A DNA stretch of 64,000 nt from Phallusia mammillata. Lineage: Eukaryota. Both the position numbers and the translations under genes were made by a program. Positions 35,681 through 63,188 of the stretch are shown here, piece by piece (within the stretch, counting starts at the first letter, position 1; each line of letters starts with the position of its first letter). A model generated the notes under the pieces. The model was not told the origin of the DNA and searched no databases. It was given only the letters and a program-made list of their open reading frames with translations. The stretch is taken from positions 28,644,001-28,708,000 of the forward strand of contig OZ281496.1 in the NCBI GenBank assembly GCA_965637545.1. The letters run 5' to 3'.

Positions 35681-38175
35681 GTATATGGTATGAGTTATCG
35701 CTAACGTAAAAATGGATCGCGGGTAATTACAGGTGTTACTGCGACCTGTTGATATTTTTTGTTGACACTTTACAAACAGTTTTTAAAAAATACATGATTA
35801 TGCAGAGCGTTAACAGTTTGCTATAATATAATCCGATTTAAGTGCCTCTCTTTTGACAGATAATCCAGAAAGCTTTTAATGTAAACTTCCATTAAAATCC
35901 GATGGATTTTAATCAAAAATTAGGGTAAGGGCAGTTTGTCAATAATTCAAACTGTCCAGCAGTTTGGGGCTTTTAACAAATGGACAAATAGGTCAGACTA
36001 GATACTTCATATTTTTAGGTTTCTAGTTTCTTGAGTCATGCTATCAGGGTACAGTAAAAAAGTGGTAAAGCTCAAATTGTGCTGGAACAAACCCATTTGT
36101 TGTAGTTAGGAGAAATTACCATCTTGCGGCGATGCATCGATAAACAGCCCATGATCAGGTTTCTATTAACAGACACTGTAGAAGAGACTATGCGGCCACT
36201 GCGGTGTGTATTATCGCTAAAGATGATTGTAATCAAATCCTGATGTGTGTAAAGATAGCAACCAAAACGACTTTAAGCACCAAAGCCGTGCTTACGTATT
36301 AACCACATTGTGATAGAGTCATCATGGCATTAATGTTTAAATTTAGATGCTCCAGACAAGAAAAGCGTTGAATGTACTTTGGTGCTTGTTTTATTAGCAG
36401 AATTGATAGATATATATTAATTAATTGGCCAATATATCGATTTATATGGATTTGTTTTACAGTTAACACGCAAAAACCTACCTAGTTGCTTCAAATTTTA
36501 AGCAAGTAAAATAATGACTTTCCTGTGCATTAATCATGGAAAAATCCAGCCTGTGGTTGGATTCGAACCGATGACAGGAGTTAATGAATTTTTGTTTATC
36601 TTTCCTGTACAGCGTCATTTGAAATGCACCACAACAAATTTTATGAGTTGCAAAAGTAATTTTTACTGTACGGGTATTTACAATTGTATTCAATTGGGTC
36701 CACAAACATACATCTGTTTAACTGTCATTTGAATTGCACATGCATCTATTTTTTTCTGATTTTTAACTCCATGGTTTTCAATGAGTAGTAAAACCCACGA
36801 AAAGGCTCCCAGCAAACACCATCGGCATATGAGTTATGCGGACCACCAAAGTAATAACCATTGGGATTGCCAGCGTGGCAATGTGTGAACCATCCACCAC
36901 CTTTGTAAGTCTGAGCACAATTTCCTAAATCCGTATCTTGATCTCTGTCCTTTGTGGAGAATCTAGTACCAGTGGGTTCCAACCCATTACCTTTAACAAG
37001 TTGCAATCCATTACCTTGCAGTATGACAACAATCATCATGATTATAGGTAAAAATATTTGAGTAAAAAAAAATGTACCTGCTGGCCCGGAAAAATGTTCT
37101 TGTGTCAAGGTGTAATTGTTTCCAGAACCCACAGAAAAGTTCCTACAATAATTGAAACACGTTGTAGTTTGTGACATAATACCCTAAAAAACTCAAGCGC
37201 ATAAATATACCCGTAATATGCATAGGTTTGGTTTCCCTCAAAGTCCTCCATGTCAATTCTCATTTCATAATCGCCACTGTTTGTTAACAAGTGTAAGTTT
37301 TCAAGACCTGTAAAGCAAACGAGGTTCGCGACAATGTTGACAGGTTGAATACTCCACAACTAGCAAGTAGGTCGCAATAACAACGGTAAAATGAAAGTAG
37401 AGGTAGTAGTGAAGTAAATCCAAAGTAAGCCTCAAATGAGCCAAACTTGATGTCATTTTAACTACTTACAAGACGTATAGACTTAAAAACAAGAAATGCA
37501 TGTGGACCTGTCCAAGAAACGCTATCCGCAAGCTGATTGAAAAAAAAAACAGCCGAATTGGGCAAAGAAAAACTTTGTAACTTTGGCACTTAGCTGTGGT
37601 AAGTTATTTGGCGAGCCATTAAAATGTTGTGGCGGCGATTAGCCATATTTCTTTTTTAGACCAGTTGCATTATCATGTTTTTCACTTGGTTGTTTAAAAA
37701 ATAATCCACTGCCTCAAGTTGTTGGACAACACAGTGGAAGAAAAACCGCAAACAATTTAGAACATTTAGTCGACGGTTGTTGCACGTGTTTTGCTTTTCA
37801 ACACTCACCCAACCAGAATTCGCCATCTAGTTTTCCAAATCCGTTTACGTATTCATCCCATCCACGATCGAAGTTTTCTGAACCATCTTTTCTTTTCTGG
37901 AAAACCTATACGTACATTTTCTTCTTTACGATATGATTGTTCATGATTAATTCATTTACCCTACCAGCCATCCGCCACCGTCTGTCGCCAAATCACAGTA
38001 AACTTTGACTCCCTGACGCCCTCCAGCGAGCGGGTAAATCGTATAAACGCCACCGGTGTCGTTTGCATATCGAGGTGAAACATCTCGACAAGATTTTGGA
38101 TTGATAGCAGCTGAACATAAACGATGAAAAAAGGAAATAGTTACTGGACAAGACAGTTGATTTTTTTGGCTTTAC
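35681..38175. repeat. Segmental duplication, copy 1 (partner about 45507-47910, same orientation)
   Basis: About 1 kb of non-coding 3' flank plus the five FBG exons and most of their introns align at high identity by eye with the gene C region. Confidence 0.92.
36545..36585 (-). repeat. tRNA B-box-like fragment (possible SINE relic); duplicate at about 46371-46410, similar motif at about 35410-35435 (+)
   Basis: GGTTCGAATCC followed by aaccacagg; no A box or cloverleaf found. Confidence 0.3.
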
Positions 38176-40009
38176 TTGACAAAAATATGCAGTAGAGCTG
38201 AAGGTTGAGATATGCATCATTTGATAAAGTTTACTTCAAACAGATTAAAGCATTTGTTGAATGTTTCCTGAATAAACTGTCAACATGTTGCTCCATTTTG
38301 ACAAATTTCGATATTTTGCGTGCAATAGTCAGGAACTGAACAATATGAAAAAGCTCATTTGAAATAACCATCAAGTATTCAAATATCATTTTGACATGTT
38401 GAGAATGAAAATAATTGTCAGTTACCGCATTGTCTGCCATTTCCTGTGTAGTTTGCGTTGCATGAACATTGGAAACTACCCACTGTGTTATTGCAAGTTG
38501 CGTATTGGTGACAGTTGTGTGTTCCACTCATACATTCGTCGATGTCTAAATAAAAGTTTATTGCATGCATAACAATCTTCGTGCAACACTGAACTACTGA
38601 AAATAATTGTCAGCTACCGCATTGTCTGCCATTTCCTGTGTAGTTTGCGTTGCATGAACATTGGAAACTACCCACTGTGTTATTGCAAGTTGCGTATTGG
38701 TGACAGTTGTGTGTTCCACTCATACATTCGTCGATGTCTAAATAAAAGAGTATTGCATGCATAACAATCTTCTTGCAACACTGAACTACTTTGCTTACCA
38801 ATTTCACAGTCCTCTCCTTTGGTCCCTGGTAGACAGGAACAGAATTCCGCATCGATTCCCGACAAACATTGACCTTCGTTTTGACAGCTTCGAAAGCAAG
38901 TTTCTTCCTCTGAAAAATTGAAACAATAGGATTGTGAGTTTAACTTCTTTGTGAAACTTAGTATTGTAGCGTTGTGTAGTAAGCCAGCCCATAATATTAT
39001 TAATGCTTTGTTAATAAAAATAAAATCTACAAAAACATACCAACAAAGTTAAAAGAACTGCGCAAAATTCCACATGGCTGCGTTCCTTTACTTTCACGCA
39101 AGTAAAAGGTCACCGCCCCTCCCCTATCTGAAAGCAAATTGAATTTTAATTTTTTGAAAACAAACAAATAATAATCTACAAACCAGTTAAAACCCCTGCA
39201 TTAATAGCAGACGCACAGACAGAGGAATTGCTGTTGTACAGGTTTGTCCCACACACGTAGTTGGAACGACAACCGGAAGGACAAACCGCATGAGTGATTG
39301 AAAATTCGGAGTTCCCTTTTGTGCTGCATTTCACTATTCGCACAAGCAAACAAATTATGGTGTTTGCCTTGTAATGTAGGATATGAGAAATCTTACTTTG
39401 AAAAGAATATGTATTTGAGACAGAATCACATGATTCGCTGATTACGCCAAATCTTGTTGTGCCTTCATACTTGGGAAGTGGGTCGCTTTGAAACACTTCA
39501 AAATATCCTCCTTCCACTAAAAAATAGTTTTAACACTAATCAAAGTTGTATTTGTTACAAAGCAAATGTAAGATAAACACGATAAAAACACACTACTTAA
39601 CACAAACTTTGCATGTGTTTCAAGTTGTAAGACAATGTACGGGTTCACTGTGGGCAACACTCCGATCAAATGAGACGACTTACTGTCTATCAGTCCAGCG
39701 TGCATCGCAGCAAGACACAGAGGACCGCTGGCGTAGTCGTCAGTCCCACATAATTCTGCATGTTGCATCCAACAGCCGCCGGGACAAATTACTTTTGTGA
39801 TCGAGTGTTTCAAATCCGACAATTTTGTGTCGCATGTGGCTAAACACAAGTTAAGTCTTTCAATTCATCATGCCATATAGTGTGTAGAAAAATATTACAG
39901 CGCAGTTTTTACAGTGTAACTTTGGCAACTTGCGTGCACTACATAAACGTACCTTCATGCAGAAACATGTGGAAACTAACAATGCGAAAGCGAAAATAGT
40001 TTTATGCAT
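36746..40009 (-). CDS. Gene A: putative secreted LCCL-LCCL-EGF-cbEGF-cbEGF-fibrinogen-domain protein (first junction unresolved)
   Basis: Exons: 40009-39953 ([19 protein letters not shown], signal-like; phase-0 donor does not fit the next exon); 39839-39684 and 39516-39397 (LCCL1: [44 protein letters not shown]); 39333-39184 and 39127-39041 (LCCL2, shortened); 38909-38799 (EGF); 38737-38618 and 38545-38426 ([17 protein letters not shown] cbEGF); FBG 38110-37965, 37905-37809, 37307-37211, 37142-37078, 36990(or 37014)-36746. The frame is open from 39839 to the stop. Confidence 0.85.
38407..38790. repeat. 192-bp tandem duplication of a cbEGF exon plus intron
   Basis: The two 120-nt exons are identical; the flanking intron parts differ at only a few bases. 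Confidence 0.95.
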
Positions 40010-40522
40010 TTTTGGTAAACGTGCTTTGCAAGGAATACTACCTCTTGTGTAGAGCATGTTTGTACACATATGGTGCCTAGTATAATTTCATACAGGCGGT
40101 ATTTTTATCATTAATGTGATAATGTAATAAGTCAGTCAAAACGATCAACTAATGGATGGATTCTTTCTAATGGATTCTTTGAATAAACAATTACTCGTGT
40201 ATGACGTAACATAAGGTATAGATTAAAAAATGCAAAAAGGTTTGCAACAAAACAAAAATAAAACAGAAAAGTCATAGATAAACAAGGCAGTGAAACTAAT
40301 AATAAAGATTAACACAAGTACATTGAAGAGGCCTTAAATGCACACGAACCTGGAAGCGAGATTTAAAATGAATTGTAAAACAAATAACAAACAAAGCAAA
40401 TTGGACAGTAACCTTATCGTCTAAACGTCATTTTACAAAAGAAAAAACTAGTTCATATTACGACTGTACATATTCTGAACAAGAATATACCTATATTTCT
40501 ACCGATGTGCAAAAGTTTAAAC

Positions 40523-41000
40523 CAGGGTTCTTCAACGGGGGCGATTTCGTCCACCGAGGGGGCGATGTTGACAATTTGTGAAATTGGGGGGCGATTTTAC
40601 TTCAAAGGGGGGCGATTTCAACATTACTGATTGTATAAATACGTATAGAAAACTGTAATACGTATAAAAAACTTTAACTTGCAAGCAAATTTTATTCGTC
40701 TTGCAAACAAACACCAGGGACAAAGGGTGCATCAGCTTAAACATGCTGTTATTGAAATATATTGTTTTTACCGCCGATTGTTTGTATTTTTTGTGATCTC
40801 GAGAGCAAGGTTTGGCATTCAATTTGTTATTTGACAGAGAGGACACTTTATTAAGAAGCTTTCGTGTTGCTAGGTGAATCTAACCGCCCACATCTGCTCA
40901 AGTAGCAGAACTTTTATCCAAATAACAGTATCACAGGAGGCGATTCTGAGCCAGTCCCTTAAAAAGGGGGCGATTTCGTCGAAAAGGTTGAAGACCCCTG
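40523..41000. mobile_element. hAT (Charlie/Buster-like) MITE
   Basis: TIR CAGGGTTCTTCAAC...GTTGAAGACCCCTG; perfect TSD GTTTAAAC (40515-40522, 41001-41008) with central TA; subterminal gggggcgattt repeats. Confidence 0.92.
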
Positions 41001-42132
41001 GTTTAAACATTACCTGTTGTTGTTATAATAGGTTAAAAAAAGAAAAAAAGGGTTACTTGTTTTTTATTGTACCTTGCAAGGATACACTTCCTTGAAAATG
41101 TGATAAAATCCGCACCAGCAAAACGTAAAAACCAATAACCCAATTCAGTGCCTTATCCATTATGAAAATTCTGCAGTCTTAAAATGACACAAATGTATTA
41201 GTCTAAAATTCTACTTAAAATATGTTCAGTCAAGTCTTAGTGTAGCCCGGCAATATCTTGTAAACAACCTTGATTCTACGAGTTGCTAATTGCAGGTTGG
41301 TTAACACATAGACAGGTTAAGCAAATTATTTTTGGCTTATCACACGAAAATGTTAAGTCCCTTAGACATTTTCCAAAACAAGTAATATAATAATCCTGTT
41401 TCTGAAAGCAATTTAAAGCTAACAATATTTACAGAAGCCAAGTATCTTACTGCACTGCTGAGATGCGACCGAACAACAGTAAACATGATTAATAAGTGAT
41501 GAGCATCGAGTTTAAGACCAACGTCTGTTGAAACAACGATTTAATGTTTATGACCAACGTCAGAAAAAAAAAACGATTTAGTTAAACGCCATTCGGGCCA
41601 TAAGAGTTAAATGTACTTTTATAGCTTATGATCATGCTACTTTACTCTACATATAAATGCAATTTGGCAGTTGGTTAGGTTTAAAGCAGTGCATTTGCTA
41701 TTTGAATGTCTGACGTAAGTAACTAACAACGGAAGTCAACAACTATATTAACTCTTAGTACAGGTTTAGTTTGTACTAAAAAAATTACAGACAGGTAATT
41801 TTTTTTTGTATTTATTTTACTGCCCAAGAAATACAAAACGTGCTTTATAATGGCCGAAGGTTTGTAAAATTAAATTGCAATATAATTAAGGCTTATTTTG
41901 TAGGTAGCAAATGTACTACAAGTTGGAAAGCAAACAAAGTCACAAATAAACAGAAAACTGAGTTGATGTGGATTGGTTCCCAGGTTCACATTTAAAAAAA
42001 ATGTCGGACATTTATATTAGCTGAAACCTTTTTCGTCGAACGTATCGCCAACTTTATAGAAACAAGTTAATAATCAACAAATGAGTTTTGTGTTTTGCTT
42101 AGCAACGAACGAGAAAGTCGAAATCGTCTTAC

Positions 42133-42232
42133 TTTGAAACGAGTAGGTGAATGAAGCAGAAAAGCATGCTTCGCTGGTCACGCCGTAACTGGATGTGCCT
42201 ACGTATTTGGACAGTGGATCACTTTTGAACAG
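42133..42232 (-). pseudogene. 5'-truncated LCCL C-terminal-half exon relic
   Basis: Translates LFKSDPLSKYVGTSSYGVTSEACFSASFTYSFQ followed by an A|gtaag donor; paralogous to gene A exon 39516-39397 ([33 protein letters not shown]). No acceptor; it is fused to gene B sequence on the other strand. Confidence 0.8.
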
Positions 42233-44078
42233 ACGAGCCAAAAAGAGATGGTCCCAATGCAAGTCTGAAAACCTTCTGCGTTTTAAGGACTCTAATTCAT
42301 TGGGTCAATAGTTGGCTGTTACGTTTTGGTAAGAATAAATTTTTAGTTGTAATTTTATGTAAAAACACTATTTTTAAATTCATGTTGACCCAGGTGTTCA
42401 CCACGAAGCCAAACAGCAATCTCGGTAAGTTTGGGATTATTATTTTTTACAAATTGTGAATTAAAAAAAATGTAAAAGCTTCATGGTTTAAGAACATTAA
42501 TATGTTCATCAAAACAGTAATATATAATGTGGAGTTTAATACATCTGTAAAGATTTAGGTGAAAAAGAATTAGAACAACTCGCGACGGAGTTACACAAAA
42601 GATTAAATCAAACAGAAGGTGAGATTTGCATTTGATTTAAAAAATGTAAGCTAATGGAATGGAATGTAACAAAACCCTGTTAACGCTGTTTAATAGGTCC
42701 AAGCAATGCGGCGGAACAATGCGAATGTGATGTAGAAATCGAACTTCAAAACAAGTTGCAGCAACTCCACGCAAGACTTGCCAAAGTTGAAGGTAAAAAT
42801 TGTTTGCAAATTAATCCATGCCAAAAATATTCATATACGTTTTGAACATTTATGCCCAGCTTTCATCAACCCAACGTCTTGTCGGGATGTTGCACCTCGC
42901 CATGCATACGACACCGGCGGCGTTTATACGATTTATCCACTTACTGGAAGGCGTCAGGGAGTCATAGTTTACTGTGATTTGGTTACAGACGGCGGTGGAT
43001 GGCTGGTAGGGCAAATTTCTTTTTTAATAACTTAATAGATACAAAAGAAACTTCGTAAAGTGAAATTGAATCAACAGGTTTTCCAGAAAAGGTAAGATGG
43101 CTCAGAAAACTTTAACCGCGGATGGGATGATTACGTCAAAGGATTTGGGAAACTAAATGGCGAGTTCTGGTTGGGTGAGTGACAATTTTTTTATTATTTA
43201 GGATCGATGTAATTTCGCGCGTGAATAGAATCGAACTGCTTATGTTGAGTTTTTTCATGTAAATTTATTGTTTACAAAACTTTCACAAATATTTACCATT
43301 TTCCGGTAGTACGCTAACGCGAGTTAATTTTTACGTACCAATGTCAATATTTCTACACAACGCAAACCTTGACCAATTTAAAGGAACCCAATTTGCTTTA
43401 CAGGTCTTGAAAACTTGCACTTGATAACAAACAGTGGCGATTACGAAATGAGAATTGATATGGAGGATTTTGAAGGGAAACAAAACTTATGCTCATTACG
43501 GGTAGCAATGCAAAATTTAAAACGTGATGTTTAAGAGTGACCAATTATCTTCCATTTTATTAGAAAATTTTCCGTCGGTCCAGGAAGTAATTATACCTTG
43601 ACACAAGGCAGTTTTTCCGGTCCAGCAGGTAACTTTTTTTCTCAATCATAAAATTCATACTTTGTCAACGTCAAAAACATCTACCTGTTTGAACCACTAC
43701 AAACAATCTTTTGTTATGTCAAAAACAATTTAACCGTTGTTGAAACATGCCTTAAGATTTTTATGCTTATCTAACAGTTAGTTTTTGTCTGTTTTTCTAT
43801 GCATGACGTTTTGGATTTTTACCTTTTATGAAGGTAATGGTATGCGACCCACTGGTGCCAGATTCTCCACCGAGGACAGAGACCAGGACACATGGCCAAA
43901 AAATTGTGCTCAGTCTTACAAAGGGGGTTGGTGGTTTACAAATTGCCACAGTGGAAATCCCAATGGTTATTACTATGGTGGTCCGCATGACTCATATGCA
44001 GATGGTGTTTGCCAGAGTCCGTTTCGTGGGAATTACTACTCATTGAAAACCATGGAGATGAAAATTAGAAGAAAGTAA
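42227..44078 (+). pseudogene. Gene B: type II membrane FReD pseudogene (collagen-less subtype)
   Basis: Exons about 42227-42328, 42394-42424, 42553-42618, 42697-42792, 42860-43005, 43078-43174, 43404-43501, 43564-43628, 43834-44078. Lesions: 5' truncation, 11-nt deletion in the TM exon (after 42297), in-frame TAA at 43093-43095, and a +1 frameshift near 43475 (98-nt exon versus 97 in paralogs). Confidence 0.9.
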
Positions 44079-44400
44079 CTGCATGAGTAGCTCCAACAAA
44101 AGCTAAAAGCGATATTTTTTTAATTTGGTAGAGTTGGTGTTATATTTTATATCTGTCGACTGTAATAAAAATCTTTCCAAAAATGTTTTTAATATTTTTT
44201 ATTACTTGTTGTAATTACAAACACATCTGTGGTGTTCTTAACTGTTAACTGTTTCCGACAACAGTAATAGCTTTGTTTTGTGATGTTGATGTGTTTTGAT
44301 GTAAATGTTGTCTGATGAACAAAATGTTATGGATTTTTAAAAATAAAGTGTCATGAGTACTTGCAAGAATGTACTTGTATGGGAGCAGGTTGATGTACAG

Positions 44401-44824
44401 CAGCGGTTCTTAAACTGGGGTCCGCGGTCCTTTAGGAGCCCGTGAGGCAATTTTGGGGGGACCGCGAAGGGGTTAAAGTAATTCTATAATCTTATTTGGC
44501 GTCAGTTTGTGCCACTAAATAAGTTTAATTCAAAGTGGAATTGAGAATCGACTGTCTCCATTGCTAAACAATAGCCTTTATTGAAAGACAACTACCAAAA
44601 ATGCAATTGTTCGCGCACACTCGTAATGCTTTTTTTGTATTGTCTGTGATGTCGTAAGCTGTCTTTGGATGATTATTATGCGCAATTTTGTATAACCAGC
44701 TAAAATCCTGCAATCAACTTTCGTTTTTATGAAATACACATTTAGGCTTAAGGACCGCGAGCCCTCGAAATAATGTCAAAGGGACCGTTTTAAAAAAAAA
44801 TATGAAAAAGTTTGAGAACCACTG
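44401..44824. mobile_element. hAT (Charlie/Buster-like) MITE
   Basis: TIR CAGCGGTTCTTAAACT...AGTTTGAGAACCACTG; TSD ATGTACAG (44393-44400, 44825-44832). Confidence 0.9.
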
Positions 44825-44832
44825 ATGTACAG

Positions 44833-45360
44833 CAGGGCTGCAACTCCTTGGGATTTTTCCCAAGATCTTGGGATTTCAGTGCTGAGCTTGGGATCTTGGG
44901 AAAAACTTTTTAAACCTTGGGATTTTTTGAAATTCTCCGTTTAATACGTTTGAGATGCAAATATTATTATTGTTGCGAACAAAAATTATCCTTTTGCAAA
45001 AATCATCTTTTTATGTAACGATTCTTTGTGTTTAAAGCCGTGTAAGTTGATTGAAATTCGCTGTCAAAACTAGTGAGTCAGGCCAGTACTACAGGCTTTT
45101 CGATGTATCATGTGCCAGTAAAAAAAATGTCCAAAAAAACTTATTTTTTCTTTTGTATTTTTCTGGTATTTCTTATCACCTTTTCAAAGGTTCGTGATGG
45201 CTGGGACCTGGTGTAACTATAAAGATTATGTTTGCCTGCTCCAGCTAGGATTTAAACTGTGTATTTGCCATTTTTTGGTTATCTTGGGATTTTTGGACAA
45301 ACCTTGGGATTTTTAGTGAGGGAACCTTGGGATATCTTAAAATTCTCAGTGGCAGCCCTG
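44833..45360. mobile_element. hAT-type MITE abutting the previous one
   Basis: TIR CAGGGCTGCAACT...AGTGGCAGCCCTG; TSD ATGTACAG (44825-44832, 45361-45368); subterminal cttgggat repeats. Confidence 0.9.
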
Positions 45361-45506
45361 ATGTACAGGAACGTTTGCAGAAATTAGTAAACTTTAACTT
45401 GAGTTTTACTGCTAAAAAGTTTGAGTCTCTAGAATAGGTAAACATTGTAAAAATCATTAAATGTCCAAAGGAGAAGCTACTGCATCGTTAACGGACTTAT
45501 AATACG

Positions 45507-47910
45507 TGTATGGTAAGAGTTATCGCTAACGTATGAATGGATCGCGGGTAATTACAGGTGTTACTGCGACCTGTTGAAATTTTTTGTTGACACTTTACAA
45601 ACAGTTTTTAAAAATATCTGATTATGCAGAGCGTTAACAGTTTGCTATAATATAATCCGATTTAAGCGCCTCTCTTTTGACAGATAATACTGGAAGCTTT
45701 GAACATAAACTTCCATTAAAATCCAATGGATTTTAATCAAAAATTACGGTAAGGGCGGTTTGTCACTAATTCAAACTGTCCAGCAGTTTGGGGCTTTCAA
45801 CAAATGGACGAATAGGCCAGACTTGATACTTTATATTTTTTTGGTTTCTAGTTTCTTAAGTCATGCTATCAGGGTACAGTAAAAAGTGGTAAAGCTCAAA
45901 TTGCGCTGGAACAAACCTACTTGTTGTAGTTAGGAGAAATTACCATCTTGTGGCGATGCAGCGATAAACAGCCCATGATCAGGTTTCTATTAACAGACAT
46001 TGTAGAAGAGACTATGTGGCCACTGCGGTGTGTATTATCGCTAAAGATGATCGTAATCAAATCCTGATGTGTGTAAAGATAGCAACCAAAACGACTTTAA
46101 GCACCAAAGCCGTGCTTACGTATTAACCACATTGTGATAGAGTCATCATGGCATTAATGTTCAAATTTAGATGCTCCAGACAAGAAAAGCGTTGAATGTA
46201 CTTTGGTGCTTGTTTTATTAGCAGAATTGATATATATATATTAATTAATTGGCCAATATATCGATTTATATGGATTTGTTTTACGGTTAACACGCAAAAA
46301 CGCACCTAGTTGCTTCAAATTTTAAGCAAGTAAAATAATGACTTTCCTGTACATTAATTTTAGAAAAAAACAGCCTGCGGAGGGATTCGAACACATGACA
46401 GGAGTGAATGAATTTTTGTTTATCTTTCCTGTACAGTGTCATTTGAAATGCACCACAACAAATTTGAGTCGCTAAAGTAATGTTTACTACGGGTATTCTC
46501 AATTGTATTCAATTGGGTCCACAAACATACAGTCGTTTAGTTTTTATTTGAATAGCACATGCATTTATTTTTTTCTGATTTTCAACTCCATGGTTTTCAA
46601 TGAGTAGTGGTAGCCTCGAAAAGGCTCCCAGCAAACACCATCTGCATATGAGTCATGCGGACCACCATAGTAATAACCATTGGGATTGCCACCATGACAG
46701 TTTGTAAACCACCAACCACCTTTGAATGACTGAGCACAATTAGATGAGTAAGTATCCTGGTCCCTGTCCTTGGTGGAGAATCTAGTTCCGGTGGGTTGCA
46801 ATCCATTACCTTTAACCAACGTATAAGTTTCGTTAATGAAAACCTAGTTTCGTGAACCTAAAATACAAATCATTCTTCATTGCAGTATGACAACAACCAC
46901 AATGATTATAGGTGCAAAGAGTTGAGAAAAGAATATGTACCTGCTGGCCCGGAAAAATGTTCTTGTGTCAAGGTGTAATCGTTTCCAGAACCCACAGAAA
47001 AGTTCCTAGAATAATTGAAACACGTTGTATTTTATGACATAATACCCTAAAAAACTCAAGCGCATAAATATACCCATAATATGCATAAGTTTTGTTTCCC
47101 TCAAAGTCCTCCATGTCAATTCTCATTTCATATTCGCCACTGTTTGTTATCAAGTGTAGGTTTTCAAGTCCTGGAAAGTAAACAAGGTTGGTGACAATGT
47201 TGACAGGTCAAATACTCCACAACTGCGAAGTTAATCCCTAAATGAGCCAACATTTGATGTCATTTAACTGCTTACAAGACGCATGCATGTAAAAACACCA
47301 AAAACAGTCGGCAACTCGATCTTAGAGATCCTAGCCTAGTTGAGAAAGAAACTGCCACTTTGGTACTTAGTTGTGGTAAGTTCCATTACGTTAGAGCCAT
47401 TAAAACGTTACGGTAGGGAATATTCATGCGTCTTTGATCAAAATCAACAATTTTTAGCTGTTGCATGGAAAACAATAATCAAAATGAATTTAGAACATTC
47501 GGTTTGGCGGTCGTTGCACGTGAAATGCTTCTAAACTCTTACCCAACCAGAACTCGCCGTCTAGTTTCCCAAATCCGTTCACGTAATCATCCCATCCACG
47601 ATCGAAGTTTTCCGAGCCATCTTTCCTTTTTTGGAACACCTGTACGTACATTTTCTTCTTTACGATATGATTGTTCATGATCAATTCATTCAACCTATAC
47701 CAGCCATCCGCCACCGTCTGTCACCAAATCACAGTAAACTTTGACTCCCTGACGCCCTCCAGCGAGCGGGTAAATCGTATAAACGCCACCGGTGTCGTTT
47801 GCATATCGAGGTGAAACATCTCGACAAGATTTTGGATTGATAGCAGCTGAACATAAACGATGAAAAAAGGAAATAGTTACTGGACAAGACAGTTTATTTT
47901 TCTTTTGACT
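45507..47910. repeat. Segmental duplication, copy 2 (partner about 35681-38175)
   Basis: Same non-coding and FBG sequence as copy 1; homology ends in the intron upstream of the first FBG exon. Confidence 0.92.
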
Positions 47911-48542
47911 TGACAAATAACTGGTTTCTGAATTAACTTCCAACCACCTTCAGCTCTTGCAAGTCTCTCTTCAAGTTGCTGCATCTTGTTTCGAAGTTCG
48001 ATTTCAGAATCACATTCGCATTGTTTCGCCGCGTCGCCTTTATCTCCCTTGGGACCGGGAAATCCTCGTGGACCTGTCAAATGATTATGTTTACTAGCCG
48101 AGTGCTTGTCTTTCCAAATAATGAGATTGATAGAAAAGTAAAGTCAAAATAAGTTTAAAAAACTCCTCGTGAAATCGGCCATAGTTAAATCGCAAACATA
48201 TGCTGGTCACCAATCAACAACTACGTGTTTGATTATTGAGACATAATTGTTAATCACACTTTTGTTGCCTTTTGTATGTTGCGAAATGCTTGGAGGGCTG
48301 ATTTAGATTCGGTTTACTCATCTTGAAGCATGTTGCTATATGTTTGTCTTACCTCTTTTGCCTGGTGGGCCTCGACCAAAGCTTGACATTGTGCCTGTAT
48401 TTGATTGATTATTCGATAAAGATCTTTGAAACACTTCATGCAAACTTCCACACTGAAAATTCACTGAACATGATTCCAAGTTAATGTGACCGCTTGCAGC
48501 AGCGAGAAACAACAAAACCAGCAAAAAGTGTTTGGGAGCCAT
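46565..48542 (-). CDS. Gene C: secreted ficolin-like protein (signal peptide, Cys segment, short collagen, CEC/coiled coil, FBG), about 321 aa
   Basis: Exons 48542-48353, 48073-47948, 47846-47701, 47639-47543, 47170-47074, 47005-46941, 46809-46565; 966 nt, open frame. Signal [18 protein letters not shown]; collagen [21 protein letters not shown]; FBG motifs [42 protein letters not shown]. Confidence 0.92.
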
Positions 48543-49067
48543 TTCAACGTTTAACAGAAAGTCAAGCACAAATGCTGCATCTTTTATCACAGAGGGACAA
48601 TTTATACAGTGGCGATGAGCTGTTTGTGGAAAACAAAGTTGACTCGAGGGAATTTCGTAGATGAGAATGTCACGTACCGAAACTGGCTTGGCAAAAACAA
48701 GTGAAGCAATTTAATTTGAAATGGAAATTTTCCCAAGCGCTTCCAAGGTTATGTTGTTGCCATATCTAAACATTTGTAACAAAATTAATCGCCCGTTTAA
48801 GCTATACTGTAGTTTCAAATCTCCACTCATTACTATTTTTATCAAAATTAAAGTAAAACATCAATAGCAAAGCAAAAACGATGTTTTAAACCAACTATTT
48901 ATAGCCTTCTGGATCTTGAAAAATTCGGGGCCTTTTGCCAAAGCACTGAATTCATATGAGCCAATTGCAACAAACCTGGTAATAGTTTTTAGCTTCTTAT
49001 ATCCGTAATATGTTCTATTTATGTAACTGTCTTGTAACTGTGGAGAATAGGAAATGTTGTGCTGATA

Positions 49068-49300
49068 CAACCCACTGGTACTAGATTATCCAACAGGGAC
49101 AAAGAACAATTTAATATTTGTTCGAATGGTTGTGCCCAGAAATACATAGGTGGTTGGTGGTTTCCAAATTGCCATGCTGGAAATCCCGATGGTTATTACT
49201 ATGGTGGGCCGCATGAATCATATGCCGATGGTGTTTGCTTGAGGCTGTTTCGAGGCTACAATTACTCATTGAAGACGATGGAGTTGGAATCAGAAAAAAA
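49068..49300 (+). pseudogene. Orphan FBG terminal-exon fragment
   Basis: QPTGTRLSNRDKEQ...GGWWFPNCHAGNPDG...YADG; no acceptor or upstream exons; frameshift just before the usual KIRKK end. Confidence 0.88.
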
Positions 49301-50177
49301 TGCGATTGCAGCTTTAATGATAAAATATTATCAGTTTTAATGAAAAATTAATGGAAACGTGTCAGTTTATCGTATGCTGTACGATGTGTGTATACAACCA
49401 ATTGCATATGTGATATGTTTTTATAATGCGAGACTACGGCGGACGTTTTAGCTGCTGGTCCTTTTTGAAGTTTCAAGTAATTTCGTTATTTTTTTATCAC
49501 TCTCTGTAAATGCCGAATAAATAAATTTTTGATTTTTAGACGGTTTAGATTTTCATGACACTCCACAATAATATGACGGAACGGCGGCGAAACGTGATAT
49601 CATTTGCTTAATGTATTTCGTAACAATTACTATTTAAAACATTAGTTCAGTCAAATGACATGTTTTGCAACTGGTGTTTTAATTAGAAAAACCAAGAAAA
49701 AACCAAGAGATGCATTAAAGAAACATAGTAGGTGTTACCAACATGGTTATCAATACTATGGACTTGTTCTGACAGCTTTCGCTATTGACCATCCATCAAA
49801 CAGCATTGGTAAGGTATGGCTTTTTAGCCTGTTACTTCCAACAAACTGGAGTGGCATGCCGTTGAATGGCTACACTATAGCCAATACGGCCGATCTCTCG
49901 TCCCCAGCTGCATTTATGAGATTTATGAGACCTTATAGGTCAAAACAGTATGCAAGTCCGCAGTTTATCATTTATTGGATTTTTGCTTTTGTAACTAGAT
50001 ATCATGGAACTAAATAATTTTGAACAATCTAGAGTTATTGTCAAATCATTTACAAAGTGCTTTTGTATTCACATGAGCTCACGTGCAAAACTTAGCGTAG
50101 GTCACAGCTTTGAGCAAGCTGTGTTTTTTTAAAGCAATGCCAAACCCACTGGACTATAAGACGTTGACGGAATCGTG

Positions 50178-52567
<2,390 letters not shown>

Positions 52568-53160: not shown

Positions 53161-53650
53161 CTAAATTACCACATCGTCAAGGGAAAATTCAATGACATCC
53201 TCGACCCTGACGATGCTTTTTTAGTTTCGTCACCAACCCCAACATCTTCAATGGCTTTGGTATCATAATAACGACATACCATAAACAGAGTCGCCACTTG
53301 CATTTTTTCGGATAAAAAACATCCATGCAAGCACTTCCAGGTTTTCAGACGACAAGTTCGATGATGGTTCATTTGAAACATGCTTTACAACTAGATATCA
53401 TTTGACTAAATGCTTTATAAAGCCTACCTGCTGTCATCGCGTTACCGTCAACGTCTTTAAGTCCAGTGGGTTTGGCATTTCTTAAAGAAAAAAACACAGC
53501 TCGCTTAAAGATGTGACATACGTTACGTTTTGCACGTGAGCTCGTGTTAAAACAGAAACACGTTTGTAAAAAATTTGTAAATAACTCCAGATTCCCTAAA
53601 ATTATTTTTTCAATCATATCTAGTTGTAGCTCATTAGGTAGCAAAAAAGT
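53161..53650 (-). pseudogene. Inverted 5' remnant (upstream block plus MTA first exon) of a lost FReD paralog
   Basis: ATGACAGCAG|gtagg at 53437-53428 on the minus strand, with upstream sequence homologous to about 49980-50190; direct-orientation homology stops at 53160; no FBG exons follow. Confidence 0.7.
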
Positions 53651-54085
53651 CGTTCCATTACTGTTCCGACGGTTGGACTAAATTGGGACAAACATGACTG
53701 AACAAATTAATTTGGGCAAAATTAAGTTTGACTAAACGCAAACACATGATCTTTACCTTCCATGCAATGTAGTTTTCAAAATTGGTGAAGTCCATCATAT
53801 TCGCCAAAGATATTTTTTTTTAACAGATGACTTGCTTAAAAGGCACGGAATTGTGACACCAATAAACCAACATATTTGGTAAACAACTTCTATTTAAAAA
53901 AACACGTACTAAAGCGTGGTGTTACCTGTGTGCTACAATTATAGAATAAAGGAGGCGTATTGAGTAACACAGTAGGTGTTAGCAATATGTGGCAAGAGAG
54001 ATTGTTCTTATATTCTTGCTTCGACCAATAAACAGCTATTGGGTCTGGGACTATTGGAAGGCAAACAATTATCATTTGCTGCAAC

Positions 54086-56219
54086 ATGATGAATATTTAC
54101 GAAACGCCGGATCTAAATGGTATAAAGTGGTTTTGTGTTTTGTATGAGCGCTTTAAAATCAGAACGAATTTTGTTTTGGGGTATGATGAAATGCATATCC
54201 GAGGCGTAAAATTCATAAAAAATGTCAAATTTATAAAAAATAATGTGCGAATTTTCCAAAAAAACGTACAAAAAGATTAGACAATAAACTGAGTTGATAA
54301 TATTTTTAACTATAGGTGAAAAGGGTCAACCAGCAACAGAGATTAAAAAAGAAGGTTACATTCCAAGTGTGTCAAGCCCATCCAAGTCAATCAAGTTCGG
54401 CGTTATGATTGCTGTTGTCTTGTGCGTTGTAATAGGGTTGGTAGTTGGCAGCTACGTTTTGGTAACTATACTTTTTTAGTTTGCAATTATGGATGGAAAA
54501 TTATAATTTAAAAGTTCAAAATTGACCCAGGTGTTCACCGCGAAGACTAAAGGCAATCTCGGTAAGTTTAAGAAAATTTACAAATTATGTGCTTAAATCC
54601 GATTTGAATCAATAAAACAATTTGACAACAATAATACAGTGTCGGGTTCAATACATCTGCAAACATTTAGGTGCAAGAGAATTAGAACAACTAGCGACGG
54701 AGATACAGAAAAGATTGAATCAGACAGAAGGTAGGAACTTGTATTTAACCTGAGAAATTCAAGCTGGTGGCAAAAAATAACCTTTTGACACTGTTTGACA
54801 GGACCAAGGGGATTTCCCGGTCCCAAGGGAGACAAAGGCGACGCAGCAGAACAATGCGAATGTGATTCTGAAATCGAACTTCGAAAAATGTTGCAGCAAC
54901 TACAATGGAGACTTGCCAAGGCTGAAGGTATTTGGGAAGATTGTTCACAAAGTAATGTCTGCTATTACATGCACGCTTTACGTTTTTTAACATTCATGTT
55001 TAGCTTCCATCAACCCAACGTCTTGTCGAGATGTTGCACCTCGCTACGCAAACGACACCGGCGGCGTTTATACGATTTATCCACTCACTGGAGGACGACA
55101 GGGATTCAAAGTTTATTGCGATTTGGTGACAGACAGTGGCGGATGGCTGGTAGGGTGAATGTCTCTTTTATTAACCAAATAAAACGAAATTTTACTTAGT
55201 AAAGCAAACCTGAATCAACAGATATTCCAGAAAAGGAAAGATGGGTCAGAAAACTTTAACCGTGGGTGGGTTGATTATGTGAACGGATTTGGGAAACTAG
55301 ATGGCGAATTCTGGTTGGGTAAGTGGGCATGCTTTTTCAGTTGGAATCTGTAGTGTTTACAATTAAATGATCTCTATGTAAACAGTATATCACGTGACCG
55401 TATGTGACCACGCCGTATCTATGAGCGCGAGCAATAGCGAAAGCATATAAACAAACATTTTGTGTTATGCCTATAGTCTCTAACACAGCACTAGGCAGCA
55501 GAACGTGTGTGAATGGAATGGAACTGCTAATGATAATTTTTTTCATGTAAATTTATTGTTTACAAAAACCTACAAAAGTATTTAACACTTTATTGCACCA
55601 CTCGTAATAGTTTCTACCTACTGCAAACCCTTGACCAGTTTACAGCAAACTAATTTGCTTTCCAGGTCTTGAAAACTTACACTTGATAACAAGTAGTGGA
55701 GATTATGAAATGAGAGTTGACATGGAGGACTTTGAAGGAAACAAATCTTTTGCATATTATGGGTAAGGGTGTGATTTTACAACATGAATAATACTTTGCA
55801 CTAAAACCTATTTTATCATTAGGATTTTTTCTGTCGGCCCAGGAAACGATTATGTCTTAACACGAGAACATTTTTCCGGGCCAGCAGGTACATTTTTTTT
55901 TACTCAAATATTTTTACCTATAATCATGATGATTGTTGTCATACTGCAAGGTAATGGATTGCAACTTGTTAAAGGTAATGGGTTGGAACCCACTGGTACT
56001 AGATTCTCCACAAAGGACAGAGATCAAGATACACATTCAGGAAATTGTGCTCAGACTTACAAAGGTGGTGGATGGTTCACACATTGCCACGCTGGCAATC
56101 CCAATGGTTATTACTATGGTGGTCCACATGACTCATATGCTGATGGTGTTTGCTGGAGGCCATTTCGTGGGTATTACTACTCATTGAAAGCAATAGAGTT
56201 AAAAATCAGAAAAAAATAA
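54086..56219 (+). CDS. Gene E: type II membrane FReD with Tyr-containing cytoplasmic tail and collagen, about 348 aa
   Basis: Exons 54086-54119 ([11 protein letters not shown]; inferred first exon), 54316-54461 ([22 protein letters not shown]), 54531-54561, 54671-54730, 54802-54927, 55004-55149, 55222-55318, 55666-55762, 55823-55887, 55975(or 55951)-56219; open frame. Confidence 0.86.
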
Positions 56220-57212
56220 TTGCACATATAGTATGATAACGATTAAACGACAACCTACTTCTATATATGGTATATAAGGTGCACATTAAGCGATTTATAC
56301 AACCGATTTTAAATAAAAGTGACAATCATACAAGTTGTTTTGTGAACAAACTACGATTCCAAACATAATTGGCCGCAAGAAAACAAAAAAACGAGATAAA
56401 CGTTTAAGAGTGATTTTGCCAGAAATCTAACATAGCATCTTGAAGTGACGTCGCGTAGTTTTTTGGCTTAGATTGTCAAGGTGCGGCAAACTAAAGGCAA
56501 TCGGTCAATTATATTGGGCATTAAAAACAGGGGCAACTTTACCATGAAAATTTGAGTAATGAAGAATTTACTGTCTGAAATAGAATGGAGCCAGATTCGC
56601 AAAATTATAAACCTTTCGTAGGTAGGTATTAGACATTGATAATAAATTTTCAGCCTTTATCCGAACTGACACCAAGATTTAGCTGCAAACCTATTCACTC
56701 TTTTAACAGAAGTACCACACACCGCATTACAAACTGTGCAGCCTACTCATTTCCGTTCTATATCGTGCGTAATTTCCGTTGCTACGTATTTTCATGGGGA
56801 ACAAACTCAAATAACATTACGCTTGTGTTGCGTTTATCGGATAAAAGTGGTAAATCATGAAACAGAGGTGGTATACATGGTTTTTAAGCCTGTTACTCCC
56901 AACAAATTGGATTGCCGTTGTATGACTCACCAGGCAATACGACCGATCTCTCGTCGCCTCAAGCTACACTTTACAGACCTTACAGGTCGAAACAGTGTGT
57001 ACTGTCCGCAGTTTATAATTTATTAGCTTTTACGACTAAATATCATTGAACTAAATAATTTTGGGGAACGTAGAGTTATTACCAATTTTTTACAAAAGTG
57101 TTTTTACAATAACATGAGCTCACATGCAAAACGTAGCGTATGTCGCAGCTTTAAGCGAGCTGCGTAAGAAATGCAAAAACCAACTGCACTGAAAGACGTT
57201 GACGCAAACGCG

Positions 57213-59465
<2,253 letters not shown>

Positions 59466-59990
59466 TTGCAAACATAGTAGGATAATTAAACGACAACCAA
59501 CTTATATTTATGGTATATAATATGCGCATTTAGGTGAGTTATACAACCGATTGCAAATAAAAGTGTATGTGTACAATGTGCAAGATTTAAAAACAATTAT
59601 ACAAGTTGTTGTGCAAACAAACTACGTTTCCAAAGATATTTGGTCGCCAGAAAACAACAAAACTAGTTAAATGTTTAAGAGTCATATAAATGTTTATCAG
59701 AAAGCTAACATATTATCTTGAAGTGACTTCGCGTAGTTTTATAGCTTAGATTTTTAAGGTGTGGCAAACTAAAGGTAATCGGTCCAGCTTATTTGCCATT
59801 AAAAACAGGGGCAACTTTCCCATGAAAGTTTGGGTAATGTCGAATTTACTGTCTGAAATAGAATAGAGCCAGATACACCTTTTGAAGGTAATTAAGTATT
59901 ATACATCAATGATAATTGTTTAGCCTTTATCCAAGCTGACACCAAGGTTTAGCTGCATAACCACTTACTCATTTAACAAAAGTACCATGT

Positions 59991-60245
59991 GGAACAAACT
60001 CAAATAGCATTACGCTTGTGTTGCGTTTACCGGATAAATGTGGTAAATCAAGAAACAGAGGTGGTTTAGCCACGCACATTTCTTACTTGCAGGCCTGTTC
60101 TGAACTGTTCCCAACACGGAACGAACTCAAATAGCATTATGCGTGTGTTGCGTTCGCCGGATAATAGTGGTAAATCAAGAAACAGAGGGCTCAGCCAACA
60201 CGCACATTTCTTCTTGCAGGTCTCTTCTAAACTGTTCCCAACACG
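59991..60245. repeat. Two-copy tandem repeat (about 127-bp unit)
   Basis: aactcaaatagcatta..gtgttgcgtt..ccggata..gtggtaaatcaagaaacagag..cacgcacatttc..ttgcagg occurs twice; related sequence at about 56800-56870. Confidence 0.85.
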
Positions 60246-60693
60246 AATATTCATAACTGTTTGGTCCGACATGATAAACAGAAGAATTACAAATATTCGT
60301 TACTGCAAAACAATCCGCAACTAAAACGTAGATGAAAAAATAAATAGCGGTGATCAAAAATCGAGTTTCCTTTTTATCCAAGTTAATCACACGTACGGAG
60401 AAGAAGTCATCGGCGTATTTCTGTCTGTTTGGAAGAACTCGGGCGGACGATTGAAATAATTTCGGCAAAGGTTTTGATACATAACAAAGCTCAAAATATC
60501 TAAACGAATTTCTAGTGTACAAGGAAATAACAAACTGAGCCCGTTGATAAGCGGTGGATAAAGCAGTTGGTGTTGTCTGTTACAGGAAAAGAGAATACAT
60601 GCATTAAAGGAACGTGGGAGGTTTGACGGGTCCCACCAATGTTTTTGCCCAAACCAGCTGACGAGTCAAACAAGTGTTTTTCGTTTTAGAACG

Positions 60694-63188
60694 ATGGAAG
60701 TTAATTTGTCAAAATCAATTGGTACGTTGTTACTTTATTATTTCAGTTTTGTACTTTCAGGTTCTAGTCTACGTTTTTGGCATGTTGGAGTTTAGGACAT
60801 TTGTTAGAATGTTAGATTAAACCTATTATGCCAAAAACGATTATTGGGAAATGACAGCAGCAATGATTTAAAAATTAACCACAGGAAAAAAAGCTGCAAA
60901 TTTAGAAACATTTTTAATTTTAGAAACAAAACGTCATTCACCACCAACAGAAAAAAAGATGGATTCTACAAGTCTAAGAAAATTTGACGTTGTCATTGCT
61001 CTTGTTATGTGTGTTGTAATAGGATTAATAGTTGGTGGCTACGTTTTGGTAAGAACTGTTATTTTCATTTCTTACCATTACGCGTAATAGAAATGTAAAC
61101 ATAGTTTTTTTTATACACAGATGTTTAACGGAAAGTCAAACAATTTTCTCGGTAAGCTTTCGTGCCAAATTAACTAAAACCTCTTAGTTAAAATATTGTA
61201 ACTAGCATGGCTTATTATTTTAGGTAAACAACAATTGCAGCAACTGGCAGCTGAAACTCAAAAAAGACTAAATCTATCGAAAGGTAAAGGGTATTTGATT
61301 CCAAAAAATTACCAATAACTTTCAACTAACGCAAATTCTTGAAATAATATAGATCAACAAGAACTACGTCAACTAGCAGCTGAATTGCAGAACAGACTGA
61401 ATCTAACAAAAGGTAAAAAGTCTTTGAAACCAAAACAATTACAACATTTTACTTAATGCAACGTTTTGAAATGCTGCAGGAGAACAGGAATTACAACAAC
61501 TAGCGGCTGAATTGCAGAAAAGATTGAATCTGACAGCAGGTATAATTCATCTTAGATTTAAATGACACAATTCTAAGAAGTCGATTGAAACAAAACGTTA
61601 CGACTTCAAAATATAAATGTGACGAGTTTAGTCAAGTTGAGAGCGGGAAAATCTGTAAATCCATCGTTTTCATTGTAGTGGACATAAAATGACCTACCTT
61701 AGTTACTTTCTCCATTTGACAGGTCCACGAGGATTTCCCGGTCCCAAGGGAGACAAAGGCGACGCGGCGAAACAATGTGAATGTGATTCTGAAATCGAAC
61801 TTCAAAGCGTGACTCAGCAATTACATAAGAGACTTGCAAGAGCTGAAGGTGGTTGAAAGTTAATTCAGAAACCAGTTAACAAGATCTCATAACGATGTTA
61901 ATAAATTTATTGATCCCGTTGGAATTTGACTAATAAAAGTTAAAATATCCGAGGCCGAATTCAAAAGAATACTTTTATTTGGTCAAGACAAAAAGGCAAT
62001 TGCCTTGTCCAGTAGCTATTTCCTTTTTTCATTGTTTATGTTCAGCTGCAATCAACCCAAAATCTTGTCGAGATGTTGCACCTCGCTATGCAAACGACAC
62101 CGGCGGCGTTTATACGATTTATCCACTCACTGGAGGGCGACAGGGAGTTAAAGTTTACTGTGATTTTGTGACAAACAGCACCGAATGGCTGGTAGGGTGA
62201 ATGCTTGTGCATTGAGTATAAAGGAAAAATACAAAAAGTAAATCAACAGGTGTTCCAGAAAAGGAAAGATGGGTCAGAAGACTTTGAGCGTGAGTGGGTT
62301 GATTACGTGAACGGATTTGGAAAACAAGATGGCAAATTCTGGTTGGGTAAGAGTTTCGCCATAACGTTCTCAATGGCTCTGATGTAATGAACCTTACCAC
62401 AGCTACGTGCTAAGTAGGCAGCAAGTAGGCAATTGGCTGGGTTCTCACTTTAAGTTGCGAGCTGCGTTTTGAGAGGGGCAAAAAGTTACTTTTGTTGCAC
62501 GTGCATGCATCTCGTAAGCCGTTTAAACACTTTTATCTCATCCGCATTTTACCGTTGTTATTGCGACCTACCTACTAGTTGTGGAGTATTTGATCTGTCA
62601 ACATTGTCGCAAACCCCGTTTGCTTTCCAGGTCTTGAAAATCTGCACTTGATAACAAACAGTGGCGATTATGAAATGAGAGTTGACATGGAGGACTTTGA
62701 TGGAATAAAATCTTATGCGCATTACGGGTGTAAGATTCGATTTTACAACAATCATGGTATTTAGACTAACCTGTGCCTGTCGCAACTATTTCAGGATATT
62801 TTCTGTTGGCCCAGGAAACGACTATGCTTTAACACAAGGCAGTTTTTCCGGACCAGCGGGTAAGTAAGTAAATAACTAGTTTTATTTTAGAATGTGCAAA
62901 TGCGTGCACCAGTTATCTAAAAACGAGGGAAATCAAGTTTGTTATTTCTTGCAACCCACTGGTACAAGATTCTCCACAAAGGACAGAGATCAAGATACAC
63001 ATTCAGGAGGGAATTGTGCTCAGTCTTACAAAGGTGGTTGGTGGTTTACAGATTGTCATAGTGGAAATCCCAACGGATATTATTATGGTGGTCCACATGA
63101 CTCATATGCTGATGGTGTTAACTGGTATTATTTCCGTGGTCACCACTATTCACTTAAAATAATGGAAATGAAAATCAGAAGAAAGTAA
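60694..63188 (+). CDS. Gene G: type II membrane FReD with triplicated coiled-coil exon and collagen; last acceptor doubtful
   Basis: Exons 60694-60721 (inferred first exon), 60924(or 60885)-61048 ([22 protein letters not shown]), 61121-61151, 61224-61283, 61353-61412, 61480-61539, 61723-61848, 62046-62191, 62250-62346, 62631-62727, 62795-62859, about 62938-63188. The usual aag|GTAATGG start of the last exon is gone; the only in-phase AG found is a weak caag at 62937. Confidence 0.78.

Follow-up and report, generated by a model that had tools for sequence, protein, structure and literature searches.

One ficolin-type head cassette on three predicted kinds of stalk in a tandem gene cluster of the tunicate Phallusia mammillata

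Introduction

No invertebrates are more closely related to vertebrates than the tunicates, whose lectin–complement pathway informs the origin of the vertebrate system. Expanded and modular families of proteins that carry fibrinogen-related domains (FReDs) are well known. A different set of recognition proteins, comprising the membrane collectin CL-P1 and the class A scavenger receptors, combines a type II anchor, a coiled coil and a collagen-like run with a C-terminal recognition head; these heads are C-type lectin or SRCR domains, and the collagen regions are long. Here, a stretch of 64,000 nucleotides from the genome of Phallusia mammillata was analyzed (C3:28644001-28708000 of a 240-Mb assembly, with no N; hereafter the window), in which a tandem cluster of FReD genes presents one head cassette on several kinds of N-terminal stalk.

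The closest described systems are the ficolins, tachylectin-5A of the horseshoe crab, and FIBCD1, a chitin/acetyl receptor. Ascidian ficolin transcripts have been reported in blood cells (PMC5465252), and FIBCD1 is a vertebrate membrane FReD protein built of a tail, a type II anchor, a coiled-coil region and the FReD (PMC6153955). The locus described here shares features with each of them. We consider it probable that it is a birth-and-death tandem cluster of the ficolin/tachylectin-5 type, in which one head sits on three phase-compatible stalks and would serve in recognition.

Results

Six intact FReD genes, one pseudogene, one orphan last exon and several inverted relics lie between 36.7 and 63.2 kb of the window. 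Gene H, which sits just past the window end, brings the cluster to eight genes. The intact genes are as follows, in window coordinates unless stated otherwise.

36746..40009, minus strand: gene A, 524 amino acids; signal peptide, two LCCL domains, three EGF domains and the five-exon FReD cassette (Pfam)
46565..48542, minus strand: gene C, 321 amino acids; signal peptide, collagen-like run, neck and FReD head
50359..52567, plus strand: gene D, predicted type II membrane FReD protein, 346 amino acids
54086..56219, plus strand: gene E, predicted type II membrane FReD protein with five triplets, 348 amino acids
57406..59465, plus strand: gene F, predicted type II membrane FReD protein, 332 amino acids
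60924..63188, plus strand: gene G, predicted type II membrane FReD protein, at least 360 amino acids; last exon of 251 nucleotides (nt), diverged head
L001:176-2175 (64176-66175 in extended numbering), plus strand: gene H, intact, 322 amino acids; signal peptide, collagen-like run and FReD

Exon coordinates were read from the sequence and joined in a script, and homology searches were run exon by exon. Using pieces of gene C as queries, tblastn found seven full head cassettes and eight last-exon copies in the window. Both strands were then scanned for the cassette with strict AG...GT borders and a frame open in the expected phase. For A, C, D, E and F, the scan recovered head exons of 146/97/97/65/245 nt (phases 1-0-1-2-1). 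The cassette of H has exactly the same five lengths and is likewise entered in phase 1. The head of G measures 146/97/97/65/251 nt; its last exon has lost the ancestral acceptor, and several conserved head motifs are altered. Pfam assigned the cassette to Fibrinogen_C (PF00147), with values of 9.5e-21 (last exon) and 4.4e-06 (first head exon), and located two LCCL domains (8.2e-12 and 1.4e-07) and EGF_CA (3.3e-12) in the window. Canonical AG/GT borders and an uninterrupted open reading frame characterize the spliced models of A, C, D, E and F at the lengths listed above, and likewise those of G (about 360-372 amino acids) and H.

In the intact gene models, the junction between N-terminal module and cassette is always in phase 1. 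Symmetric 1-1 exons encode the LCCL, EGF, helical and neck modules, and the exons for the signal and the tail finish in phase 1. One head is carried on three kinds of stalk: secreted in C and H, membrane-anchored in D to G, and LCCL/EGF in A. There are seven collagen-like triplets in C and H, five in D, E and G, and none in F or A. The initial annotation had proposed seven paralogs with five identical head exons, N-terminal modules joined at phase-1 junctions, and collagen stalks on some of them. The phase-1 junctions were borne out by the exon models, and the five lengths are exact in A, C, D, E and F, but the last exon of G differs and gene B, counted among the seven, is itself a pseudogene. 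Triplets are indeed present in C, D, E and G and absent from F, although the runs comprise only five (D, E and G) or seven (C) triplets.

Identical exon lengths were also found in a secreted relative at C3 8.93 Mb (L007), and a distant cluster on C8 has similar head exons (137/97/97 nt for the first three and 248-251 nt for the last). The exon pattern is therefore a trait of the subfamily and not peculiar to this locus. The stalk exons are distributed more narrowly: across the genome, transmembrane (TM)-type exons occur only in this cluster and in one dispersed copy (L004, described below), and the neck exon occurs in only about 10 places.

Searching the exon that encodes the binding site against the PDB returned 65 matches with values of 1e-8 or lower, led by tachylectin-5A (PDB 1JC9, 3.6e-26, 94 bits), with MFAP4, ficolin-1 (82 bits) and FIBCD1 (81 bits, 5e-22) next. 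Two Ca2+ Asp residues, a Cys pair, a His, a Tyr-Ala and two Tyr are conserved between E and tachylectin-5A; these aligned residues would have the Ca2+-binding and acetyl-pocket roles described for the structure of tachylectin-5A. Three pocket positions vary among Tyr, Phe and His between the paralogs. From this alignment, the heads would bind acetylated or glycan ligands through a Ca2+-dependent pocket, as those of tachylectin-5A, ficolins and FIBCD1 do. Relatives in public collections are distant. An exhaustive search of protein collections with the E binding exon found nothing above 64% identity, and a metagenome scan returned relatives at 53-56% identity only. A word search with a 143-amino-acid open reading frame of A gave no match, a result that is uninformative for longer proteins.

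Genes C and H encode the secreted forms. Their N-terminus is hydrophobic (19-residue hydropathy of 1.5-1.6), from which a signal peptide was judged to be present, and is followed by two N-terminal cysteines, seven uninterrupted Gly-X-Y triplets and a helical neck with a Cys-x-Cys motif. In these two genes only, the residues PGKRGP span the junction of exons 1 and 2; the membrane forms are without the motif. It resembles the Gly-Lys-Xaa-Gly-Pro motif defined for MASP binding (PMC3179595). The products of C and H would act as oligomeric opsonins, which may recruit MASP through PGKRGP. Together, H and the inverted gene C bracket the four membrane-type genes. A fragment of a further last exon lies after H (L001:2503-2565).

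Genes D to G share a common exon order of short tail, TM segment, a 31-nt exon, one to three helical exons of 60 nt, neck and head. Gene D, for example, consists of a tail exon with a Tyr motif, a TM exon, a 31-nt exon, a 60-nt helical exon and a 126-nt triplet/neck exon, followed by the head. The neck exon measures 126 nt and encodes five triplets in D, E and G, whereas in F it measures 96 nt and the triplets have been lost. Gene G contains three tandem helical exons of 60 nt in phase 1-1 (61224-61283, 61353-61412 and 61480-61539), each carrying an N-glycosylation sequon, against one such exon each in D, E and F. The Kyte-Doolittle maximum over 19 residues ranges from 2.3 to 2.9 in D to G (2.32 in D and 2.92 in E); the hydrophobic segment lies at approximately residues 15-66, with maxima centered 23-60 residues from the N-terminus. 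This anchor carries a conserved GxxxG, no N-terminal signal peptide precedes it, and the sequons and disulfide-bearing domains are located on its C-terminal side. Because there is a single hydrophobic segment and no N-terminal signal peptide, the natural reading is that D to G encode type II signal-anchor proteins with the head outside the cell. As such, they would serve as FIBCD1-like receptors for uptake or signaling.

A Tyr-[Glu/Asp]-x-[Pro/Thr] motif occurs near the start of the tail in E (54086-54119), D (50359-50401), F (57406-57436) and the dispersed copy L004 (approximately 5690-5722, minus strand). That this Tyr might act in signaling, uptake or sorting, for example as a phosphotyrosine, is speculation. 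A first exon with the Tyr motif was sought upstream of G and none was found; translation of G probably starts at an internal ATG at 60959. For D there is an alternative first exon at 50178-50187, and for F a candidate upstream exon at 57171-57222. A conserved block upstream of D and F holds a short ATG...CAG/GT exon candidate, which could be an exon of the 5' untranslated region, an upstream open reading frame or an alternative start.

The arrangement of the membrane forms raises the question of their descent. They could be orthologs of FIBCD1 inherited from the chordate ancestor, with the secreted forms derived from them, given that FIBCD1 has the same order of a tail with Tyr, type II anchor, helical region and FReD head (PMC6153955) and ranks high among the solved relatives of the binding exon. 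However, the heads of D to G are 74-91% identical to those of their secreted neighbors (91% between E and H), and FIBCD1, at 81 bits, scores below tachylectin-5A (94) and ficolin-1 (82), so that orthology of the heads to FIBCD1 was not found. Furthermore, the Cys-x-Cys neck and triplet exon are common to D to G and to their neighbors C and H, D to G have no polycationic region, and their TM-type exons are found nowhere else in the genome save in the decayed L004. Descent from a chordate FIBCD1 gene is thus very unlikely. Because the heads are much closer to the secreted neighbors than to FIBCD1, the membrane anchor reads as a local acquisition within the tunicate subfamily, and the resemblance to FIBCD1 as convergent.

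Gene A has a composite structure. Its two LCCL domains are spread over four exons, and one EGF exon and two identical EGF_CA exons precede the head. The following features of A were mapped.

35681..38183, minus strand: C-derived segment of A, from C 45506-47917 (blastn)
38183..38284, minus strand: breakpoint interval, in the last stalk intron of A
36870..37075, minus strand: conversion tract in A, 97-100% identical to E, with C-like flanks

The stalk of A and its head have different relatives. The stalk shares 80-94% identity with genes at C3 26.65 and 28.46 Mb in which LCCL and EGF domains are followed by a C-type lectin domain. Its LCCL first-half exon has at least 118 matches in the genome (C3 25.5-28.9 Mb, C8 1.72-1.98 Mb, C2, C4, C5 and C6), and the closest of these, at 90-94% identity, lie on the same chromosome in genes ending in a C-type lectin (L005 and L009). 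Farther LCCL-EGF genes on C2 and C5 end in a different type of FReD. Tandem LCCL-LCCL-EGF arrays bear either C-type lectin heads or a different FReD head (L010 and L011), and the LCCL-EGF genes look like a very large family of lectin stalks.

The head of A matches gene C instead. A segment of approximately 2.5 kb, which takes in part of the pre-head intron, all five exons of the head and roughly 1 kb of 3' flank, is 89-92% identical to C, and its 3' flank is 93% identical over 746 nt (blastn). Within the last stalk intron of A, homology to the C-type-lectin paralogs extends over the first 142 nt, and the final 73 nt correspond to the gene C intron. A alone joins a stalk of the C-type-lectin subfamily to a ficolin-type head, and its junction is spanned nowhere else in the assembly. 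A C-type lectin relic was sought near A, and none was found. Gene A arose from an LCCL-EGF gene whose C-type lectin head was replaced by a 2.5-kb copy of the 3' half of C. The exon shuffling that had been proposed for the locus is supported here, since the stalk modules are in phase 1-1, the breakpoint of A is intronic and the donor segment comes from C.

A second event changed the head of A after the replacement. The conversion tract spans the final head intron together with the first half of the exon that follows, with the Ca2+ site and the binding pocket. It was delimited by sliding identity and informative sites and shares an intron indel with E, and the synonymous distance (dS) of the last exon is 0.108 between A and E, compared with 0.639 between A and C. 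These values indicate a clear case of gene conversion from E to A, of approximately 200 nt, which later overwrote the binding-site region of A. EGF exons 2 and 3 of A (38426-38545 and 38618-38737) encode identical peptides and lie in a tandem unit of 192 nt, exon plus intron, whose copies are 98% identical; the duplication of this EGF exon is therefore very recent. Upstream of the breakpoint, the last stalk intron of A also contains a degenerate EGF-like pseudo-exon with an in-frame TGA, derived from the LCCL-EGF family.

Across all 21 pairs of head copies, the ratio of nonsynonymous to synonymous distances (dN/dS) is 0.09-0.27, with dS of 0.3-0.8; for G against the other copies, the ratio is 0.16-0.27. 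The surviving copies are old enough and under purifying selection.

Alongside these survivors, the cluster and its relatives elsewhere include copies in several states of decay.

42227..44078, plus strand: pseudogene B, membrane-type without collagen; truncated TM exon
42127..42231, minus strand: inverted LCCL exon relic, 73% identical to A exon 3 (blastn); abuts the TM exon of B
49065..49325, plus strand: orphan last head exon, stop codon lost; no companion exons
53411..53628, minus strand: inverted relic of the D/F upstream region, 80-82% identity (blastn); between D and E
C3:29834001-29842000 (C3 29.84 Mb), 3209-5730, minus strand: dispersed E-like membrane-type copy L004, 1.13 Mb away

Pseudogene B is interrupted in head exon 2 by an in-frame TAA (43093-43095), and its head exon 3 measures 98 nt, a +1 frameshift. 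The 5' end of its TM exon has been lost to the inverted LCCL relic, and an 11-nt deletion has occurred in addition. An open reading frame at 42074-42262 covers this relic. In L004, part of head exon 3 is deleted and a poly-T/tRNA-like insertion, resembling a short interspersed element, interrupts the start of head exon 1; L004 is therefore a decaying duplicate. Apparent variants at 54035-54129 in the DNA run X2 match exon 1 of L004 and are interpreted as cross-mapped reads, not as alleles. An isolated relic of a secreted-type signal and collagen/neck exon was located in L019 (C6:23655001-23664500, approximately 6609-7123, minus strand), with no head within 6.6 kb downstream of it.

The initial annotation had placed pseudogene, orphan-exon and inverted relics between the genes, where blastn and the exon scan do find them, and had interpreted the locus as one of gene birth and death. 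Tandem copies, pseudogene B, orphan and inverted fragments, the decayed L004 and purifying selection agree with that interpretation. Taken together, the tandem duplicates, pseudogene, fragments and constrained survivors are those of a multigene family that appears to evolve by birth and death. One DNA run from the same study, examined over E-F, revealed no large rearrangement.

Two stretches in the same region, 55288-55471 and 56944-57127, reach 25-30 times the surrounding depth in the DNA run X2 and are the sole places matched by a presumed RNA run. Both are probably fragments of a high-copy transcribed repeat. Upstream of the cluster, an open reading frame at window 25945-26658 (minus strand) weakly matches the first KH domain of BICC1, below the Pfam cut-off; the cluster appears to be flanked on that side by a BicC-like gene.

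Discussion

The window and its flank contain a family in which one FReD head cassette, with a predicted acetyl-type pocket, is joined in a constant phase to secreted, membrane-anchored and LCCL/EGF stalks. We consider a birth-and-death tandem cluster of the ficolin/tachylectin-5 type the probable explanation, and its members would function in recognition; a role in immunity, matched specificities and a pairing of soluble with surface forms, as the initial annotation had proposed, are inferred.

Several observations weigh against this reading. In the PGKRGP motif of C and H, the variable residue is Arg rather than the usual aliphatic residue, and the collagen-like stretch of five to seven triplets, a length that known ficolins far exceed, may be unable to fold into a stable triple helix. 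The binding exon has no excess of variable sites (42%, compared with 41% elsewhere; p=0.89), and there is no sign of positive or diversifying selection among the head copies. Trees built from head exons 1-4, from the last exon and from the neck resolved only A with C, and we leave the order of the duplications and the direction between secreted and membrane forms unclaimed. A close spliced relative was absent from the protein collections searched. The first coding exons of D and F are uncertain, with two candidates each, and the donor of A exon 1 is ambiguous: a strong GT leads to phase 0, and phase 1 requires a weaker GT at 39948-39947. On the head branch of A, five nonsynonymous and five synonymous changes were counted, compared with one and eight on that of C, which hints at relaxed constraint on the A head. 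Additionally, three presumed RNA runs over E-F gave no exon coverage and only repeat fragments. This is not proof of silence; in the run search, two DNA runs matched, and the presumed RNA runs shared very little with the query.

Some of the same observations would be expected if A above all, and perhaps G, were young, unexpressed or non-functional by-products of duplication, in which case the locus would comprise secreted and membrane forms only. The branch counts of A, the frame of its first exon that depends on the weaker donor site, the dead EGF-like exon in its last stalk intron, the lost last-exon acceptor and changed head motifs of G, and the RNA runs without exon coverage all point in this direction. 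Nevertheless, the frames of A and G are fully open with canonical AG/GT at every junction, the dN/dS of G against the other copies remains low, and A has since gained an EGF exon duplication and a conversion tract, yet no stop. We regard this account as possible, though rather doubtful.

The cluster might also serve recognition of a non-immune kind, such as gamete self/non-self discrimination or matrix or cell adhesion. The self-sterility ligands v-Themis-A and v-Themis-B of Ciona are fibrinogen-like proteins of the vitelline coat (PMC7018956), the matrix protein MFAP4 is the second-best solved relative of the binding exon, and immune expression at the locus found no support in the presumed RNA runs. 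However, v-Themis genes show high polymorphism and occur in pairs with polycystin-like genes, whereas dN/dS is low here and a check for polycystin-like neighbors found the BicC1-like gene only. Moreover, the N-terminal cysteines, collagen-like run, neck, acetyl-pocket head and MASP-type motif make up the plan of a ficolin, a protein that ascidian blood cells express (PMC5465252). A non-immune role is therefore unlikely, and recognition in immunity by a ficolin-type family remains the reading that we prefer.

A bolder proposal can be built on this preferred reading. A single tunicate locus may have independently evolved the division of labor seen between ficolins and FIBCD1, with secreted copies that retain the MASP-type motif as complement activators, surface copies with a Tyr-motif tail for uptake or signaling (E and H heads being 91% identical), a graft of the pocket onto an LCCL-EGF stalk from a C-type lectin family, and pockets matched by gene conversion. 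We put this forward tentatively, as a proposal with more chance of being wrong than right.

On sequence alone, the cluster documents well, but as an ordinary case, the dynamics of an immune-type gene family. It nevertheless shows, base by base, a head moving among secreted, anchored and mosaic stalks. The routes that can be followed are recombination located in introns, exon duplication and short gene conversion, and they include the swap of one lectin class for another. If expressed as modeled, the genes would provide a natural matched set for testing how the format of presentation alters the action of one pocket, and in the membrane forms a FIBCD1-like surface receptor would have arisen a second time, independently.

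Compared with known systems, C and H most resemble the ficolins (FCN1-3 and those of Halocynthia roretzi and Botryllus) in their signal peptide, N-terminal cysteines, Gly-X-Y triplets, neck and FReD, and they share with them an acetyl-type pocket, by residue alignment, and a MASP-type motif, although its variable residue is Arg. They differ in having seven triplets, whereas known ficolins have far more and the nearest full-length database relative, P0142, has dozens. Tachylectin-5A is without a collagen stalk and without a membrane anchor, and in the paralogs described here, Phe or His can stand in place of Tyr at three positions of the pocket.

The membrane forms D to G share the order of FIBCD1, including the conserved tail Tyr. 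In place of its polycationic region, which lies between coiled coil and FReD, they have the triplet/Cys-x-Cys neck exon common to their secreted neighbors. The layout of D, E and G is also like that of CL-P1 and the class A scavenger receptors, a likeness of layout only. The 150 best matches to the binding exon include predicted membrane FReD proteins of amphioxus (P0055, XP_002593674) and of the jellyfish Rhopilema (P0048). As in D to G, these proteins have an N-terminal hydrophobic anchor, a coiled-coil or collagen region and a C-terminal FReD; they add C-type lectin or Ig domains, and with binding exons 55-57% identical they are not orthologous. Tandem expansion, modular N-termini and gene conversion recall the snail FREPs and other expanded invertebrate FReD families. 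Unlike snail FREPs, the cluster has no IgSF domains, shows no sign of somatic or hypervariable diversification, and is under purifying selection.

The suggestion in the initial annotation that such a combination had not been described was too strong, given FIBCD1, the predicted membrane FReD proteins of amphioxus and jellyfish, and the LCCL-EGF-FReD genes on C2 and C5. What is new is the presence of this set at one locus, the precisely mapped replacement of a C-type lectin head by a fibrinogen-related head, and a membrane-anchored form of the ficolin type that apparently arose within a tunicate subfamily.

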